A DNA stretch of 63,532 bases, filler included, from Hyphochytrium catenoides (taxonomy: Eukaryota > Protista > Hyphochytriomycota): the NCBI GenBank assembly GCA_900088475.1. It is 10 parts of 10 records of this genome, joined end to end, with 100 filler letters (N's around TTAATTAATTAA, not from the genome) between each part and the next. Parts side by side here need not be neighbours in the genome. Positions count along the whole stretch, not along the records: positions 57,729 to 62,288 come from FLMG01001172.1; 9 more parts are not named here. One strand, 5' to 3'. A program made the translations under genes and the position numbers. Every line of letters begins with the position of its first letter. The first letter of the stretch is position 1. Under the pieces are notes generated by a model. The model searched no databases, had not been told where the DNA came from, and saw nothing but the letters and a program-made list of their open reading frames with translations. This document shows, in pieces, positions 56,338-62,553 of this stretch.

Positions 56338-57885
56338 GTGGGCATGGTCTGTGTGATACAGAACAAGCTGGCAGCTGACCTCCCGAGCCAACGACCCTCC
56401 CAACGCAAACATTTAGTAAAAACCATTTCTTTCACTTGAAACCTTTCAACCTTGAGGTTGTTTTTAGGTATAGAAATCATTTGAATGTTACCATTGACTG
56501 AAATCAATCGTATGTTTCAGAATTTGGCTCCTTCCTCTCGTTTTGGATGCTACTCTCTATGGTACGAGCCAGAGGAGACTGGCTTCAATACATAATTGCC
56601 CTTCTACAGTTCATGAGAGACAGGACTCCTTGCTTTACTGTTATTTTTCGAACACATGTGTGGGCCTTGTAGTCATCTTAATTCCTCATAATGCTAAAGC
56701 TTTATCCATGATAAACAAGACGCCACCACTACGCCACTGCCAGCGTACTGTACATGTACGTGTAATTTACCTGTATTTCTATGGGTTCTACCATTCTGAA
56801 TAGACCTATAGGGTGGGTGGGTTAGGAAGCAGTAAAACGTATACTCTATACTAATGCTATTGCCACTACACCTCCATATATTACATTAAACTGTGAAGCC
56901 CAAAGGGTGATTAAGCAAAGAATTGTTGGCTGCACCTCTGTCTCGTATACATTTAGGTTTATCCTATAGATTTATCCATCTCTCCGGAGAGAGAGAAGAT
57001 AGGAAGAGAGACAGGGACGAAAGGGGGAGGCACAGAGAGAGAGACAGAGAAAGAGAGAGAGGGGGAGAGAGAGAAAGAGAGAGAGAGAGAAAGAGAAAGA
57101 GAGAGAGAGAAAGAGAGAGAGAGTGATATAGAGAGAGAGAAAGAGTGAGAGAGACTTCAAGAGAGTACACTGAGAGAAAGAGAGAAAAAGAGAAAGAGAG
57201 AGAGACAGAGAGAAAGGGAGAGAGGGAGAGAGGGAGAGAGAGAGAGAGAGGGAGAGAGAGAGNNNNNNNNNNNNNNNNNNNNNNNNNNNNNNNNAGAGAG
57301 AGAGAGAGAGAGAGAGAGAGAGTTGTTCGTTTTTCATAGCAAAAGATCCACCACAAGAATCAGATGTGGAGCATACATCGCCTGGTTCTGAAGAGACACA
57401 AGAGAGAGAAAAGAGAGAGAGAAACGCTTGTCACGTACTCTCTCTCTTCAAAACAGAATTTCCACAGATCGGCAAAAAGAAAGGAGAGAAAACGAAGGGA
57501 GAAAGTGCTGAAGCGGGAGGACAAGAGAGGAGAGACAGGCTCCTACTAGACAACACCGATAAAGAGGAGAGAGAGGAGGAGAGAGAGAGCCAAAGAGAGA
57601 GAGATACACACACAGAGAGAGAGAGAGANNNNNNNNNNNNNNNNNNNNNNNNNNNNNNNNNNNNNNNNNNNNTTAATTAATTAANNNNNNNNNNNNNNNN
57701 NNNNNNNNNNNNNNNNNNNNNNNNNNNNCGCACATTCCTGTTTTCAGACCCTTGACCTAAAGGCCAAGGGCACTACGTAACCCTATAACAAGGGATAGAA
57801 AAGAAGAAGCGAAAAAAGGAAAGGAGTACAAGTCCACAAGTAGGCAAAAATAATATGTGAAGTAGTCTACCGCGAGTTACAAGTA

Positions 57886-57913
57886 CAGTAGACCCCCTGT
57901 AAATTTGCGTACC
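57886..57913 (+). repeat. Left TIR CAGTAGACCCCCTGTAAATTTGCGTACC
   Basis: Exact reverse complement of 62177-62204. Confidence 0.97.
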
Positions 57914-58277
57914 AGTCATTTTGCGTATCCACTTTTTTGCGCACAAAATCTTGGGACACAACTTTTTCGTACTGCTTCTGAATAATGACGTATTTATTCC
58001 TAAATCAGCACTAATGTTAACAAGGGGCTGATCTTTGCTCTGTTTATCTTAGAAGGGTTTCTATCTCCTCCTTCCACTTTTTCCTTCTTCAAGTTCCTTC
58101 TTCTTCGTTCCCACTCCCAGCGCCGCCGCCGCCGCGCCGCGCTTCTTCTCATTCTCCTACTTCTTCTTGCTGGTTGTGCTTGCTGGCTCCTCCTCGCTCC
58201 TCCATGCCTCCTCCTCTTTCTCGTTCTCGCTCGCTTCTCTTTATAGCGAGCCAAGCCTGCTGAAGAAAGAACAACCG

Positions 58278-61200
58278 ATGACTCTTCCAATTGCGTCCTT
58301 TCCTCCTCCTCATCAGTCCGGCAGTGGTGGTGATGGTGGTGGCGCTGCTGGGCTGTTGAGGGAAAGAGAACCCCTGCGTATGTTGGGGGAGCTGACGACA
58401 TTGCTCTCTGAGAAGGCGCTACGCAAAAGCAGCGATACCCATGATGGTCGTTGTCACATTCTTCAACCTCTCATAGAGTCTATAACAGCTCTCCTGAAGC
58501 CTTCTGGTTTTAAGGTCTACAATCCTCCGGGTGATGGGCACTGTCTCCTTCGATGTTACCTCTGCGCAGTCTACGGAGAGGCTGCGGCTTCAAACGACAG
58601 TCGTGTGGCCTCACTTAGGAGGCGCATTGCAGGAGCTTTCACAGAACTTGGCGAGCAATGCCTGGACTATGACGAGTTACTTCTTCTCTGGCTAGAGAAC
58701 TGTGACGACCGTGATGAGCGCTGGGCAGCCTCCTGTGAGGAAAACCCTAATCAAGAGAGACTCCTTCTAAAATGGCGTGCCTTTTGCAGAGATTACGGGG
58801 ACTTTAGAAAGGCAAAGTACTCTGGAGAGACAGTTCTGTCCGTCATTCGCTCCCAGATCCATCCAGAGACTGACAATCTCATATTCATTATTGTCTCCGT
58901 CTCAGAGAGGAATGGATGGCACGTGCTGGAGAAGAAATTAGCAGTTCGCGGTACAGATAAGCTGTCCGATGATCACAATGCAGTCTTTCTGATCTACCTG
59001 ACGTCTGCGCAACACTTTTGTCTTGTGACGAGGCAGCCAGAACATCCATTAGCAGATAATCGTCGGCAGCAGCAGCAGCAGCCGTTACTACCCAAAGAGG
59101 TATCATCACAAGAACCTGAAGTCACGAAGTTGCCAACAGGGCCGGCAGCAGAGGGCCAGACAAGAGGAGAAGGTGGTCGTGCTACGCTCAAACAAAAGGC
59201 CGGAGGGAAGATGCCGGTTACATCGGCCTCGTCCGGAAAAGGAAAGCAACGACAGAAGGCCAGCCGCAAAAGCAAAACTCACCTCACTATATCCGCTAAG
59301 CTTGAGGTTCTGAAAGCTCGAGCTGCTGGCGCAACTATCGCTGCTGTCTCTAAGCGATTTGGGGTATCCAAACGAACGGTGGTGTACTTGGTAACGCAAA
59401 AGAACGGGATTGAACAGAAAAACCTCAATTCAAGGCTGCGTGGAACCAAGAACTTGAAAGCTAATGTCAAATTCCCAGTCCTGGAGACAGCAGTGCAGGC
59501 CTTCGTGGAACTTATGCGCCGAGAGCGTTTCCCTGTCACTGCTAGGTTGATCCAGTCCCAAGCCCTGGCAATAGCGGCAGACCTTGGCATTGCTGAGTAT
59601 GATTTCAAGGCAAGTGATAACTGGGCAGCACGGTTCGTTAAAAGGATGGGATTGACCTCTAAGACCTTGCACGGCGAAGCCGGCTCAGCACGCGGCCTGG
59701 ATGTCTCAGATGCGATCCGCAAGCTAAGGAAGGAGCTCGACGGTTACTCTGTAGAGCACATCTACAATATGGATGAGACTGGTCTTTTCTATCGTCTCCT
59801 TCCGAAGAAATCGTACATCTGCATGGATGAGGACAAGCGGAGTGTTCGGGGCACAAAGATGATGAAGGCGAAGGATAGGATCTCCCTATACGTCTGTACC
59901 AATGCTGCCGGCACCCACAAGCTGCCTATGGGTGTGATTGGCAAATCTGCCAACCCTCGCATTTTGGGAAAAGGGGCTACTAGGACAACCCTCTTGAAAG
60001 ACCTTAGGTTAAACTACTTTAGCCAAAGTAACGCCTGGTCTGACACCAAGACTATGCTGGACTGGTTACGCGAGGTCTTTCTGCCCCAGGCTAGACGGCA
60101 TGCTAAAGGAGCTAAAATTGCTCTTATCATGGATAATTGCGGTCCTCATCTGACAAAGAAGCGTGGGGAGGATGGCGAGGAAGTGCCAGTACTACCTGAC
60201 CTCGAGGATTGTAAGTTCCTGTTTCTGCCTCCAAATGTGACTTCCATTCACCAGCCAATGGACCAAGGGGTCATTGCTCTTACTAAGAGAGCATACCGCT
60301 ATAGGCTGCTGATTGTATGGGGAAAGGTTTTTCGGTACCGCCTTCAGCTCCAGAACACATCAAAGCAGATGAAGAGAGGCACAAAGGGCATCCAGGAGGG
60401 ATCTCCTCCGCACCTATTGGATGCCATCACGATACTCTCTGATGTCTGGAGGAACAGTCTGACGAAGGAAGCAATTATACGTTGCTGGTTGAAGTCCGAC
60501 ATTTTACCTGCTGCACACCAGAAGGCACTGACCAAAGAAGTAGGGGATGACTCTGCTCGTCGCGGAGGCTCAAGGAGAAGAGTTATCCCGGATCTCTTGA
60601 GTGATCAACAGACTGAGCAGGATGCAGACGACTTTGACTCCTCATCAGTTCCAACTGCAACATCAGGGTCTCCCGCCAAGTCGCAAGGACATCTCCCCGA
60701 TACCGTGCTGGATATGGTGAAAGATATCAGTACCGCGCTCGGTGATATGGCGAAGGCGGAGCTACTGGCAGCCACAGAGAAGAAGAAGAGCTCTAACAGC
60801 GCTGCCGCTGCTACGCTGAATAAAAAACCAGAAGTGGAGCACCGCGACGAGGTGGGAGAGTGTCTACTTCAAATGGCCCAGCTAAGCGTCAAAGACCAGG
60901 AGGAGACTGTGTTACGCTGGCTAAACCTGGAGGCGGATCCGGAGATCAGCGAAGCCATTGTAAATGACGGCCTTGAGGAAATCAAAGCCAGAGCTATCAA
61001 AGAGGTAAATCAGCATGGTGCAGCAGCAGCTTCCGGGGGCAACACGAGCAGATCTATCGAGGACTTTGATGGCTGTGTCAGTGAGAGTAAACAGGCTAGT
61101 GATAATGATGAGGACACCAGCGGCGGAGAGGAAAAAGTCACATCCGCTACACCTAAAGAGCAAGGAAACCCCCCGCCGTCGAAGAAGCGACAGCCAATGC

Positions 61201-61397
61201 CCAGTTCGGAGCAGTTCTTAGCCGTCTTCGAGACGCTAGAAGGCTACTTGGTTAGTTGTGGTGTGAGTGACCAGCTCATCAAAGACACCCATAAGTTGCG
61301 CTATTCAATCCTCAGTGAGCGAGACGCGATCGAGAAGGAGGAGGAAGAGGCAAAGAAAGTCCAGGTCCGCATCACTTCTTTCTTCAGCAGGCCATGA
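58278..61397 (+). CDS. OTU-like cysteine protease / pogo transposase fusion (OTU - CENP-B_N HTH - HTH_Tnp_Tc5 - DDE_1 - PIP box); first ATG at 58278, frame open from 58167
   Basis: OTU-like: PGDGHCLLR...FLIYLTSAQHFCLV. HTH: LTISAKLEVL..VSKRFGVSKRTV. Tc5 HTH: KFPVLETAV..PVTARLIQSQA..FKASDNWAARFVKR. DDD triad: IYNMDETGLFYR, LIMDN, FLPPNVTSIHQPMDQGVI. C-terminal QVRITSFF. Confidence 0.93.
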   Translation: MTLPIASFPPPHQSGSGGDGGGAAGLLREREPLRMLGELTTLLSEKALRKSSDTHDGRCHILQPLIESITALLKPSGFKVYNPPGDGHCLLRCYLCAVYGEAAASNDSRVASLRRRIAGAFTELGEQCLDYDELLLLWLENCDDRDERWAASCEENPNQERLLLKWRAFCRDYGDFRKAKYSGETVLSVIRSQIHPETDNLIFIIVSVSERNGWHVLEKKLAVRGTDKLSDDHNAVFLIYLTSAQHFCLVTRQPEHPLADNRRQQQQQPLLPKEVSSQEPEVTKLPTGPAAEGQTRGEGGRATLKQKAGGKMPVTSASSGKGKQRQKASRKSKTHLTISAKLEVLKARAAGATIAAVSKRFGVSKRTVVYLVTQKNGIEQKNLNSRLRGTKNLKANVKFPVLETAVQAFVELMRRERFPVTARLIQSQALAIAADLGIAEYDFKASDNWAARFVKRMGLTSKTLHGEAGSARGLDVSDAIRKLRKELDGYSVEHIYNMDETGLFYRLLPKKSYICMDEDKRSVRGTKMMKAKDRISLYVCTNAAGTHKLPMGVIGKSANPRILGKGATRTTLLKDLRLNYFSQSNAWSDTKTMLDWLREVFLPQARRHAKGAKIALIMDNCGPHLTKKRGEDGEEVPVLPDLEDCKFLFLPPNVTSIHQPMDQGVIALTKRAYRYRLLIVWGKVFRYRLQLQNTSKQMKRGTKGIQEGSPPHLLDAITILSDVWRNSLTKEAIIRCWLKSDILPAAHQKALTKEVGDDSARRGGSRRRVIPDLLSDQQTEQDADDFDSSSVPTATSGSPAKSQGHLPDTVLDMVKDISTALGDMAKAELLAATEKKKSSNSAAAATLNKKPEVEHRDEVGECLLQMAQLSVKDQEETVLRWLNLEADPEISEAIVNDGLEEIKARAIKEVNQHGAAAASGGNTSRSIEDFDGCVSESKQASDNDEDTSGGEEKVTSATPKEQGNPPPSKKRQPMPSSEQFLAVFETLEGYLVSCGVSDQLIKDTHKLRYSILSERDAIEKEEEEAKKVQVRITSFFSRP

Positions 61398-62088
61398 GGT
61401 ATATGGTCGTCACTCGTCCCCATTCAATAGCAAACAGTTAGTCCAAGCTAGTCCACACAACTAATGATGATAACGCTCAAAATAAGTGATCATAGTAACT
61501 GCTCCTGCTCAACAATGATAGGATGATGGGGCGTAGAAGAAGTAGTAACAAACACAGTTCAAGGGAAGAGAGAGAATGGGTTCTATTCAACCCTAAGATC
61601 TATTTTTAGATCTAGAAGAGCAGAATGAAGAAGAACTCATTGCTCGTCACTCAACAGGAAGAAGAAGAAGAAGAAGGGAACAGCGATGTGTAGAAGAGTT
61701 GTTGAGAGAGGAGCAGCAGGAAGCAAGGAGCAAGGGCGAGAAGAGGATATTTATCGACGAACATTTGTTTTCTTCCATCATCCTCCTGTTCTTCTTCTTC
61801 TTCTCATCTTCATCATCTGCTTCTTCTTCGTTCCCTCCTCTATCTTCTTCTCGTCAATCGTAGCTTTCTTCTGTCCTCGCTTGTCAATGATCATCATCAT
61901 CATCATCAGTTAGTAGCAGCAGCAGCAGCTTATGATGCAAGCAGAAGATAGTAGTAGAAGATGATGACGCCAGGACGACGACAGGAGGGAGAAACAAAGA
62001 GTGAAGAAGAGGTGAAGATAGATGGTCGGTGGTGGGGTGGTCAAGGACCGGCGGGAGGAGAGAAGACGGCTTTCTGTGCTGGACAAGT

Positions 62089-62129
62089 TAAGCCATAGTT
62101 AATATTAGAGGGATATTAACTATGGCTTA
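62089..62129. repeat. Perfect 17-bp inverted repeat with a 7-nt spacer, in the transposon's right subterminal region
   Basis: TAAGCCATAGTTAATAT-tagaggg-ATATTAACTATGGCTTA. Confidence 0.9.
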
Positions 62130-62176
62130 TCTATTTGCGTCACCCATTGTTTTGCGTGTTGGTGGCATGGGACACA

Positions 62177-62204
62177 GGTACGCAAATTTACAGGGGGTCT
62201 ACTG
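62177..62204 (-). repeat. Right TIR GGTACGCAAATTTACAGGGGGTCTACTG
   Basis: Exact reverse complement of 57886-57913; followed by TA. Confidence 0.97.
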
Positions 62205-62553
62205 TACTCCTTTTTATTATATATTTTTTAATTTCGTGAATGGCTTTTATTGATTTATTGCTACTACTAACGCTACTAACAGACTAATNNNNNNNNNNNN
62301 NNNNNNNNNNNNNNNNNNNNNNNNNNNNNNNNTTAATTAATTAANNNNNNNNNNNNNNNNNNNNNNNNNNNNNNNNNNNNNNNNNNNNTTCTCGGATGAC
62401 CTGGGCTACCTACTCTTTTCCTTCTCGTCATCCCCCCTTGCGCCGTCAGAGAGAGGAAATACTACGGAAAAATTTTCTTGCGCCAAGCACATCGAGGATG
62501 CAGTACTCTTGGGTGCACCAGGTTAGATTTGTGAAGAGGCTACACAGCTGAAC

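Follow-up and report, generated by a model that had tools for sequence, protein, structure and literature searches.

The window analysed here is a 63,532-nucleotide (nt) stretch of DNA from Hyphochytrium catenoides, and the piece of it at 57729-62288 (record FLMG01001172.1) contains a complete DNA transposon. The element proper spans 57886-62204, from CAGTAGACC to GGTCTACTG, and has one long open reading frame (ORF), which runs from an ATG at 58278 to a stop codon at 61395-61397 and encodes 1039 residues with zero internal stops; the remaining ORFs of at least 60 residues are short and either overlap this ORF or lie in low-complexity flanks. Residues 330-737 have the make-up of a canonical pogo transposase, and they are preceded by 311 in-frame codons that are not part of such a transposase. 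The original prediction had described an intact transposon with a pogo-family transposase, had seen an OTU-like (deubiquitinase-type) cysteine protease fused to the N-terminus of that transposase, and had proposed a new pogo lineage. Judged by its sequence, the pogo part is ordinary, and the module ahead of it is real, nearly orphan, probably OTU-like and fused once. The reading that we lean towards is that of an intact, probably single-copy pogo transposon in which the 311 extra codons specify a divergent module, most likely an OTU-type papain-fold cysteine protease; its putative catalytic residues would be Asp86 and Cys89, within a D-G-x-C box, and His246, within an H-F box.

Results

The coordinates of all features are collected in Table 1. 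An inverted repeat (I1) with 35-nt arms at 57882-57916 and 62174-62208 contains one mismatch (97% complementary), and the right end, reverse-complemented, reproduces the first 32 nt of the left end exactly. Both ends are flanked by TA, the target-site duplication expected for the Tc1/mariner-pogo group. Pfam recognizes a first helix-turn-helix (HTH) domain at residues 330-376 (HTH_23, 1.5e-5, together with a weak CENP-B_N match), a second at residues 399-462 (HTH_Tnp_Tc5, 2.9e-12) and a DDE_1 core that is matched over the whole profile at residues 532-737 (5e-32). Searching residues 320-760 against 5.8 billion proteins returned 64 relatives, the best of which are 35-44% identical and mostly 580-700 residues long; almost all are environmental sequences, and one comes from the diatom Skeletonema dohrnii. 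The catalytic residues D499, D619 and D662 align with aspartates in 14 relatives, with one exception in one column, and 42 residues lie between D619 and D662. All structural hallmarks examined, namely the D-D-D DDE_1 core, the two N-terminal CENP-B/Tc5-type HTHs and the terminal inverted repeats with TA, place the element in the pogo superfamily of IS630-Tc1-mariner transposons, and this part of the original prediction holds in full. Since the core, the DNA-binding domains, the triad and the ends are intact, the element looks capable of cut-and-paste transposition.

The pattern Qxx[LIM]xx[aromatic][aromatic] has a single match in the ORF, the PIP-box-like motif Q-V-R-I-T-S-F-F at its C-terminal end, and an equivalent C-terminal motif is present in 11 of the 14 listed relatives (among P0001-P0012 and P0054). 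The Drosophila pogo transposase binds PCNA through such a C-terminal motif. By analogy with it, the 1039-residue protein may bind PCNA as well, and the recurrence of the motif suggests a conserved capacity for PCNA binding in this pogo clade, most of whose members are environmental sequences.

A continuous ORF that joins a transposase to an additional module could be an artefact of assembly or joining that unites two unrelated genes; this was considered only on account of the window being built from unrelated pieces, and nothing in favour of it emerged. A single 4323-nt Logan contig, however, reproduces 57884-62206 with zero differences in each of two separate DNA runs of the source organism (X1 and X2). 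In addition, fragments of 151-190 nt that are 99-100% identical to the element occur in environmental data: those from an air metagenome (X4) cover the module and the transposase part, those from a soil metagenome (X5) the module. They lie at 58439-58814 and 59402-59770 of the window. An artefact is thereby effectively refuted and retains a negligible probability. The air and soil fragments probably come from the same organism, which suggests that the host is airborne or soil-dwelling.

The same runs bear on copy number. The element and the contig that spans its left junction have about equal depth (18.4 versus 21 in X1 and 151.7 versus 146.4 in X2), and no second contig matching the module at an identity of at least 80% was found in the source runs. 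Hence, the element is most likely single-copy, with the proviso that contig data show presence better than absence; neither the depth nor the contig matches give a sign of the multiple copies or mobility that go with the pogo superfamily. We considered the contig break at the exact element ends as a sign of multiple copies and rejected it, because an identical 32-mer, which the two ends share in inverted orientation, breaks an assembly graph built at k=31, so the break is uninformative on copy number. Metagenome contigs of the Joint Genome Institute (JGI) were scanned for exact copies of the inverted repeat and yielded none. The DNA outside the element (57729-57772 and 62207-62288) has approximately 17-20 times the depth of the element itself (311.7 versus 18.4 in X1, 2923 versus 151.7 in X2), which puts the transposon in or beside high-copy repeats.

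The residues ahead of the transposase are an addition to it. When the closest relatives are aligned locally, their first residue falls at residues 300-327 of the 1039-residue protein. Met312 (nt 59211), the third methionine of the ORF, lies beside these positions and 18 residues before the first HTH, so the canonical start would fall at about Met312, which is the likely ancestral start, and residues 1-311 would be extra. None of the 64 transposase relatives matches residues 1-311. The longer relatives have either unrelated N-terminal add-ons of their own or nothing recognizable there: P0010 has a Znf_SCAND3 finger, and the element of P0014 (44% identity), present in two different genomic contexts (L002 7058-10025 and L003 7058-10025), has an upstream ORF of 276 residues whose zinc-finger-like start is rich in Cys and is followed by a stretch rich in Ser/Thr and by the first HTH. 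About 110 nt separate this ORF from the DDE ORF, which implies an intron or a frameshift. With such add-ons in other relatives, the N-terminus in this pogo clade seems to be a hotspot at which modules accrete. The ORF upstream in P0014's element was also considered as an OTU-like ORF and rejected, given that it encodes the Cys-rich module and the first HTH.

The module has one homologue. An exhaustive phmmer search with residues 40-270 against 1.84 billion representative proteins gave P0065 (253 residues) as the sole match, at E = 2.3e-4, and pairwise BLASTP aligned the two at 9e-14 with 27% identity over 128 residues. Their conservation starts close to the N-terminus of P0065, in a helix that precedes the Cys box, and extends through D-G-H-C-x-L-R-C, the helix motif L-R-R-x-I-A-x-A, a W-R pair and the K-Y-x-G loop, with D-G-H-C...L-R-C invariant between them. 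P0065 stands alone as an ORF on a JGI metagenome contig of 1404 nt (sample 3300059473), and it stops about where the linker of the query begins. The existence of this independent homologue means that the module is a real protein domain. A profile built from the query and P0065 returned P0065 again as the sole match and no further kin, a word-indexed protein search with the region of residues 40-270 found zero kin of the module, and scans of JGI metagenome and viral contigs with module-derived patterns gave no confirmed relative. The 1039-residue protein itself has no exact record in the protein collections searched; the source genome's own proteins thus seem to be absent from them, and relatives in sister species could be missed.

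Several lines of evidence point to OTU as the family of this domain. As the original prediction had noted, the Cys box P-G-D-G-H-C-L-L-R-C (Asp86 at nt 58533, Cys89 at nt 58542; D-G-H-C-L-L-R at residues 86-92), the helix V-A-S-L-R-R-R-I-A (starting at residue 110), the stretch Y-S-G-E-T-V-L and the His box are all present in frame with the transposase, with no stop. The Cys box, the Y-S-G-E loop and the strand with the His box follow one another in OTU order, and the 157 residues from Cys89 to His246 are within the range of known OTUs. The OTU Cys box D-G-x-C-[LF]-[FYL]-R is present and aligns both with positions 1-40 of the Pfam OTU profile and with the Cys box of 6dx3_A, the OTU domain of a viral L protein and the single PDB match of the module (E = 0.08, over 84 residues from the Cys box onward). 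Among 200,000 shuffles of the first 320 residues, scored with motif definitions that were written after the sequence had been seen, the Cys box turned up 67 times and the His box 1750 times, and the two together in order were never produced.

Family libraries gave little beyond this. Pfam OTU (PF02338; kin in MEROPS C85/C64/C65) is the module's family match, with E values of 0.04-0.21 and 12.5-14.8 bits over profile positions 1-40, and the one other Pfam match on any sub-piece of the module is RHH_10 (E = 0.18, on a 100-residue piece). NCBIfam gave zero matches for the module, PHROGs gave two families of unknown function only (E = 0.06-0.4), and tblastn against phage and plasmid records gave chance matches only (E of 5 or worse). 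Using a protein language model, 64 of the 100 nearest Atlas clusters of the module are OTU or otubain, the best named neighbour cluster having a score of 0.92 and 177 shared features (170 is typical of true family members with this tool). For P0065 the figure is 71 of 100, and for the C-terminal half without the Cys box 37 of 38 family-carrying matches are OTU or otubain, with scores that are low (0.65-0.73). According to the tool itself, one in three shuffled proteins gives ten family-consistent matches out of ten as well, and these neighbours are a lead and not a fold test. OTU is nevertheless the only family pointed to by any method, which makes the OTU reading of the module probable. We regard an OTU fold as likely for a domain with these features, and catalytic activity as well short of that.

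Other results weigh against an OTU identity, and they would fit a domain that is real and of another kind: a mostly helical orphan serving, for example, in protein-protein interaction or chromatin targeting, in which D-G-H-C and H-F would have arisen by chance. The Pfam OTU scores lie below the gathering cut-off of 23.3 bits and cover only the first 40 of 128 profile positions, and no OTU match in Pfam or PDB is significant, all of them being confined to the Cys box. The C-terminal half with the histidine, taken alone, has zero Pfam matches and zero relevant PDB matches. P0065 likewise has zero Pfam matches and gives nothing relevant against PDB, the profile of query and P0065 found no OTU in PDB but only spurious helical-bundle and Bte1 matches, and the position of P0065 aligned to His246 is not a histidine. 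AlphaFold2 models of residues 40-270 reached a predicted local distance difference test (pLDDT) score of 38.9 from one sequence and 34.2 from a two-sequence alignment; at this low confidence both are largely helical with few strands, the first starting a helix at Cys89 and the second not. Foldseek against PDB gave no match at E = 0.001 or better, a result that is meaningless with a model of pLDDT 38.9 as input. The second residue after His246 is Cys248 (F-C-L), whereas in OTUB1, yeast Otu1 and nairovirus OTUs this position holds Asp or Asn; some OTUs place the third catalytic residue elsewhere, so Cys248 does not exclude activity. As regards the fusion rather than the family of the module, single-copy depth and the lack of a fused relative in the collections searched mean that selection for the fusion cannot be shown, and translation from Met312 could yield a canonical transposase that lacks the module.

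Against a non-OTU domain stand the facts that the query and P0065, at 27% identity, both fall among OTU clusters, that the half without the Cys box does so too, if weakly, and that no other family scored better in any library. The ordered motifs with their OTU-like spacing, and the failure of shuffling to produce both boxes in order, also speak against it; the readiness of shuffled proteins to yield family-consistent language-model matches speaks for it. We hold a non-OTU orphan to be rather improbable. What stands of the original OTU assignment is an in-frame, real domain whose family signals are OTU only, including a sub-threshold profile match; what did not materialize is a match above the Pfam cut-off or beyond the first 40 positions, or a confident fold.

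A separate matter is whether the fusion has any function. The main rival to the OTU-bearing transposase is an accidental fusion, unique to this copy and without a role in transposition: an OTU-like ORF lying upstream, or a fragment captured from a host gene, would have come into frame, and the working transposase, if any, would start at Met312. The single-copy depth, together with the missing second module contig, favours such an accident, as do the mapping of the relatives' first residue beside Met312, the unrelated add-ons of other relatives (the Cys-rich module in L002/L003, Znf_SCAND3 in P0010) and P0065 as a free-standing ORF that ends at the linker. No fused relative was found in any collection searched: a second example of the OTU, HTH and DDE_1 architecture is lacking in the protein, metagenome and viral collections. 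However, the 311 codons are free of stops in a sequence of 51% GC, the putative catalytic Cys and His are intact, and the near-perfect inverted repeats indicate a young element in which the fusion has not decayed. The lack of kin is weak evidence, given that relatives of the source genome are outside the searched collections. On balance, an accidental fusion seems doubtful to us, though it deserves serious consideration. The proposal of a new pogo lineage was not borne out by the single-copy depth, the absence of the domain from all 64 relatives and the searches for a fused relative; this is one element, not a demonstrated lineage.

Table 1 Features of the element in window coordinates.
Feature	Position	Strand	Basis or remark
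Left TA target-site duplication	57884..57885	.	Matches TA at 62205-62206
Left terminal inverted repeat (CAGTAGACCCCCTGTAAATTTGCGTAC...)	57886..57916	+	Inverted repeat I1
Left subterminal TTTGCG repeats (57904, 57920, 57936) and GGGACACA (57953)	57904..57960	+	Candidate transposase-binding sites
Single 1039-residue ORF: OTU-like module, linker, pogo transposase, acidic tail, PIP-box-like end	58278..61397	+	Translation and Pfam
N-terminal module homologous to P0065, approximately residues 40-260; OTU-like core at residues 77-250 (nt 58506-59027)	58395..59057	+	
Cys box G-D-G-H-C-L-L-R-C, putative catalytic Cys89	58530..58556	+	
Y-S-G-E-T-V-L-S-V-I loop, residues 181-190	58818..58847	+	Position of the OTU W/Y-G-G...E loop (putative equivalence)
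Hydrophobic strand and His box V-F-L-I-Y-L-T-S-A-Q-H-F-C-L-V, residues 236-250	58983..59027	+	His246 (nt 59013), putative catalytic residue
Low-complexity basic linker: poly-Q, Gly-Gly (residues 299-300 and 309-310), Met312, K/R-rich residues 321-333	59058..59264	+	
First CENP-B-type HTH, residues 330-376	59265..59405	+	HTH_23, weak CENP-B_N
Second HTH, HTH_Tnp_Tc5, residues 399-462	59472..59663	+	Pfam, 2.9e-12
DDE_1 catalytic core, residues 532-737; D499 (nt 59772), D619 (nt 60132), D662 (nt 60261)	59871..60488	+	Pfam, 5e-32
Acidic low-complexity C-terminal region	60558..61361	+	No Pfam family at E up to 10
PIP-box-like motif Q-V-R-I-T-S-F-F, residues 1029-1036	61362..61385	+	Motif scan
Right subterminal TTTGCG repeats (62134, 62151) and GGGACACA (62169)	62134..62176	+	
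Right terminal inverted repeat	62174..62204	-	Inverted repeat I1
Right TA target-site duplication	62205..62206	.	Pairs with left TA

All five plus-strand TTTGCG hexamers in the 4.5-kilobase piece lie within approximately 70 nt of the element ends, and the GGGACACA octamer occurs twice, once at each end and nowhere else; from their positions, these subterminal repeats are candidate transposase-binding sites. The right-end copies of both are oriented opposite relative to the terminal repeat, giving the element asymmetric ends. The right subterminal region also contains a palindrome (62086-62132, 20-nt arms and a 7-nt spacer). In the source runs, other short contigs agree with 62094-62130 apart from 2-5 differences and continue into unrelated sequence on either side, so the palindrome is a small repeat found elsewhere in the source genome. 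A perfect 17-nt inverted repeat (58255-58271 and 61376-61392) surrounds the ORF, one arm stopping 7 nt short of the ATG and the other 2 nt short of the stop codon, where it overlaps the F-F of the PIP-box-like motif. Ten of its 17 bases are of a GAA/TTC-type low complexity that is abundant in the element, and the repeat may be due to chance; it may also reflect long-range RNA pairing or be a trace of nesting.

Discussion

In its TA duplication, inverted repeats, paired HTHs, D-D-D DDE_1 core and PIP-box-like end, the element resembles the canonical members of the pogo superfamily (pogo, Tigger, Fot1/Fot-like, Passer, Mover and Lemi; PMC7386202, PMC7325037). In these, a few tens of residues precede the first HTH, whereas the present protein has 311 additional N-terminal residues. 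The surveys of the superfamily make no mention of a protease or OTU domain, and the additional domains that they list all belong to domesticated genes, namely CENP-B, POGK and POGZ (PMC7386202, PMC7325037). Those genes likewise join an additional domain (KRAB, zinc fingers), close to the N-terminus, to a complete pogo transposase (PMC7386202), but they are immobile host genes without inverted repeats, while this element keeps both repeats and the TA.

OTU domains on transposons are known from Ginger1 and Helitrons, and new here is the combination of a module that is OTU-like by its sequence with a pogo transposase. Searching the full-text literature for OTU together with pogo, or together with DNA transposases, revealed no case beyond those two groups (Repbase and Dfam were outside the search). 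Ginger1 also encodes a cut-and-paste transposase and an OTU-type cysteine protease in one ORF (PMC2836005). Its DDE enzyme is Gypsy-integrase-like and its OTU is C-terminal and recognized by Pfam, whereas here the transposase is of pogo type and the module is N-terminal and below the Pfam cut-off; Ginger1 elements with OTU or Ulp1 also form multi-copy families, in Hydra, Aplysia and pea aphid (PMC2836005). Helitrons and Helentrons carry papain-fold deubiquitinase domains, OTU and/or VTD (PMC9741609); they are rolling-circle elements with RepHel proteins, in contrast to the DDE transposase found here. For the OTU and VTD domains of Helitrons, a role in shielding transposition proteins from the proteasome has been proposed, and for transposon OTU, Ulp1 and VTD domains in general the proposals are either such protection or an influence on DNA repair under the control of ubiquitin or SUMO (PMC2836005, PMC9741609). 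According to PMC9741609, transposon OTUs, those of Helitrons included, have never been assayed.

If the module is an OTU enzyme, it would be an accessory isopeptidase or protease carried by the transposase. It might strip ubiquitin-like modifiers off the transposase itself or off proteins where transposition takes place, and the PIP-box-like tail could bring it to PCNA, aiming the enzyme at ubiquitinated PCNA or its neighbours. Alternatively or additionally, a cut at a Gly-Gly of the linker (residues 299-300 or 309-310) could release a canonical transposase. Some viral OTU-like proteases remove ubiquitin and also cut their own polyprotein after Gly-Gly-like sites. The likeness to viral OTUs (nairovirus, tymovirus, arterivirus) consists of the alignment of 6dx3_A, which is of nairovirus type, over the Cys box and the following helices at E = 0.08 only; there is no viral context here, and Gly-Gly cleavage in this protein is pure conjecture. 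The second Gly-Gly lies two residues before Met312, in the linker stretch of residues 299-312 (59172-59213 of the window); Gly-Gly dipeptides occur eight times in the ORF, and this one is therefore only a hint at a cleavage site. The most specific version, an autonomous transposon that makes its transposase as a polyprotein with an active divergent OTU isopeptidase that either frees the transposase after the Gly-Gly at residues 309-310 or, carried to PCNA through the PIP-box-like motif, strips ubiquitin-like marks at the site of transposition, is to us an improbable scenario.

Unrelated transposons have repeatedly acquired deubiquitinase or protease domains: OTU and Ulp1 in Ginger1, OTU and VTD in Helitrons, and Ulp1 in Mutator-like elements. 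The value of the present case is limited by its single copy, by the weak signals behind the OTU assignment and by a general theme that is already known. If the module is OTU, it would represent an independent acquisition in the best-understood group of cut-and-paste transposons, in which transposition assays are routine. In the scenario of an active isopeptidase, this element would become the first in the Tc1/mariner-pogo group to bear a protease, and the module and P0065 would form a new OTU subfamily that is invisible to current profiles. With the module and a PCNA-binding-type motif on one polypeptide, the benefit that a transposon draws from a deubiquitinase of its own would become directly testable.

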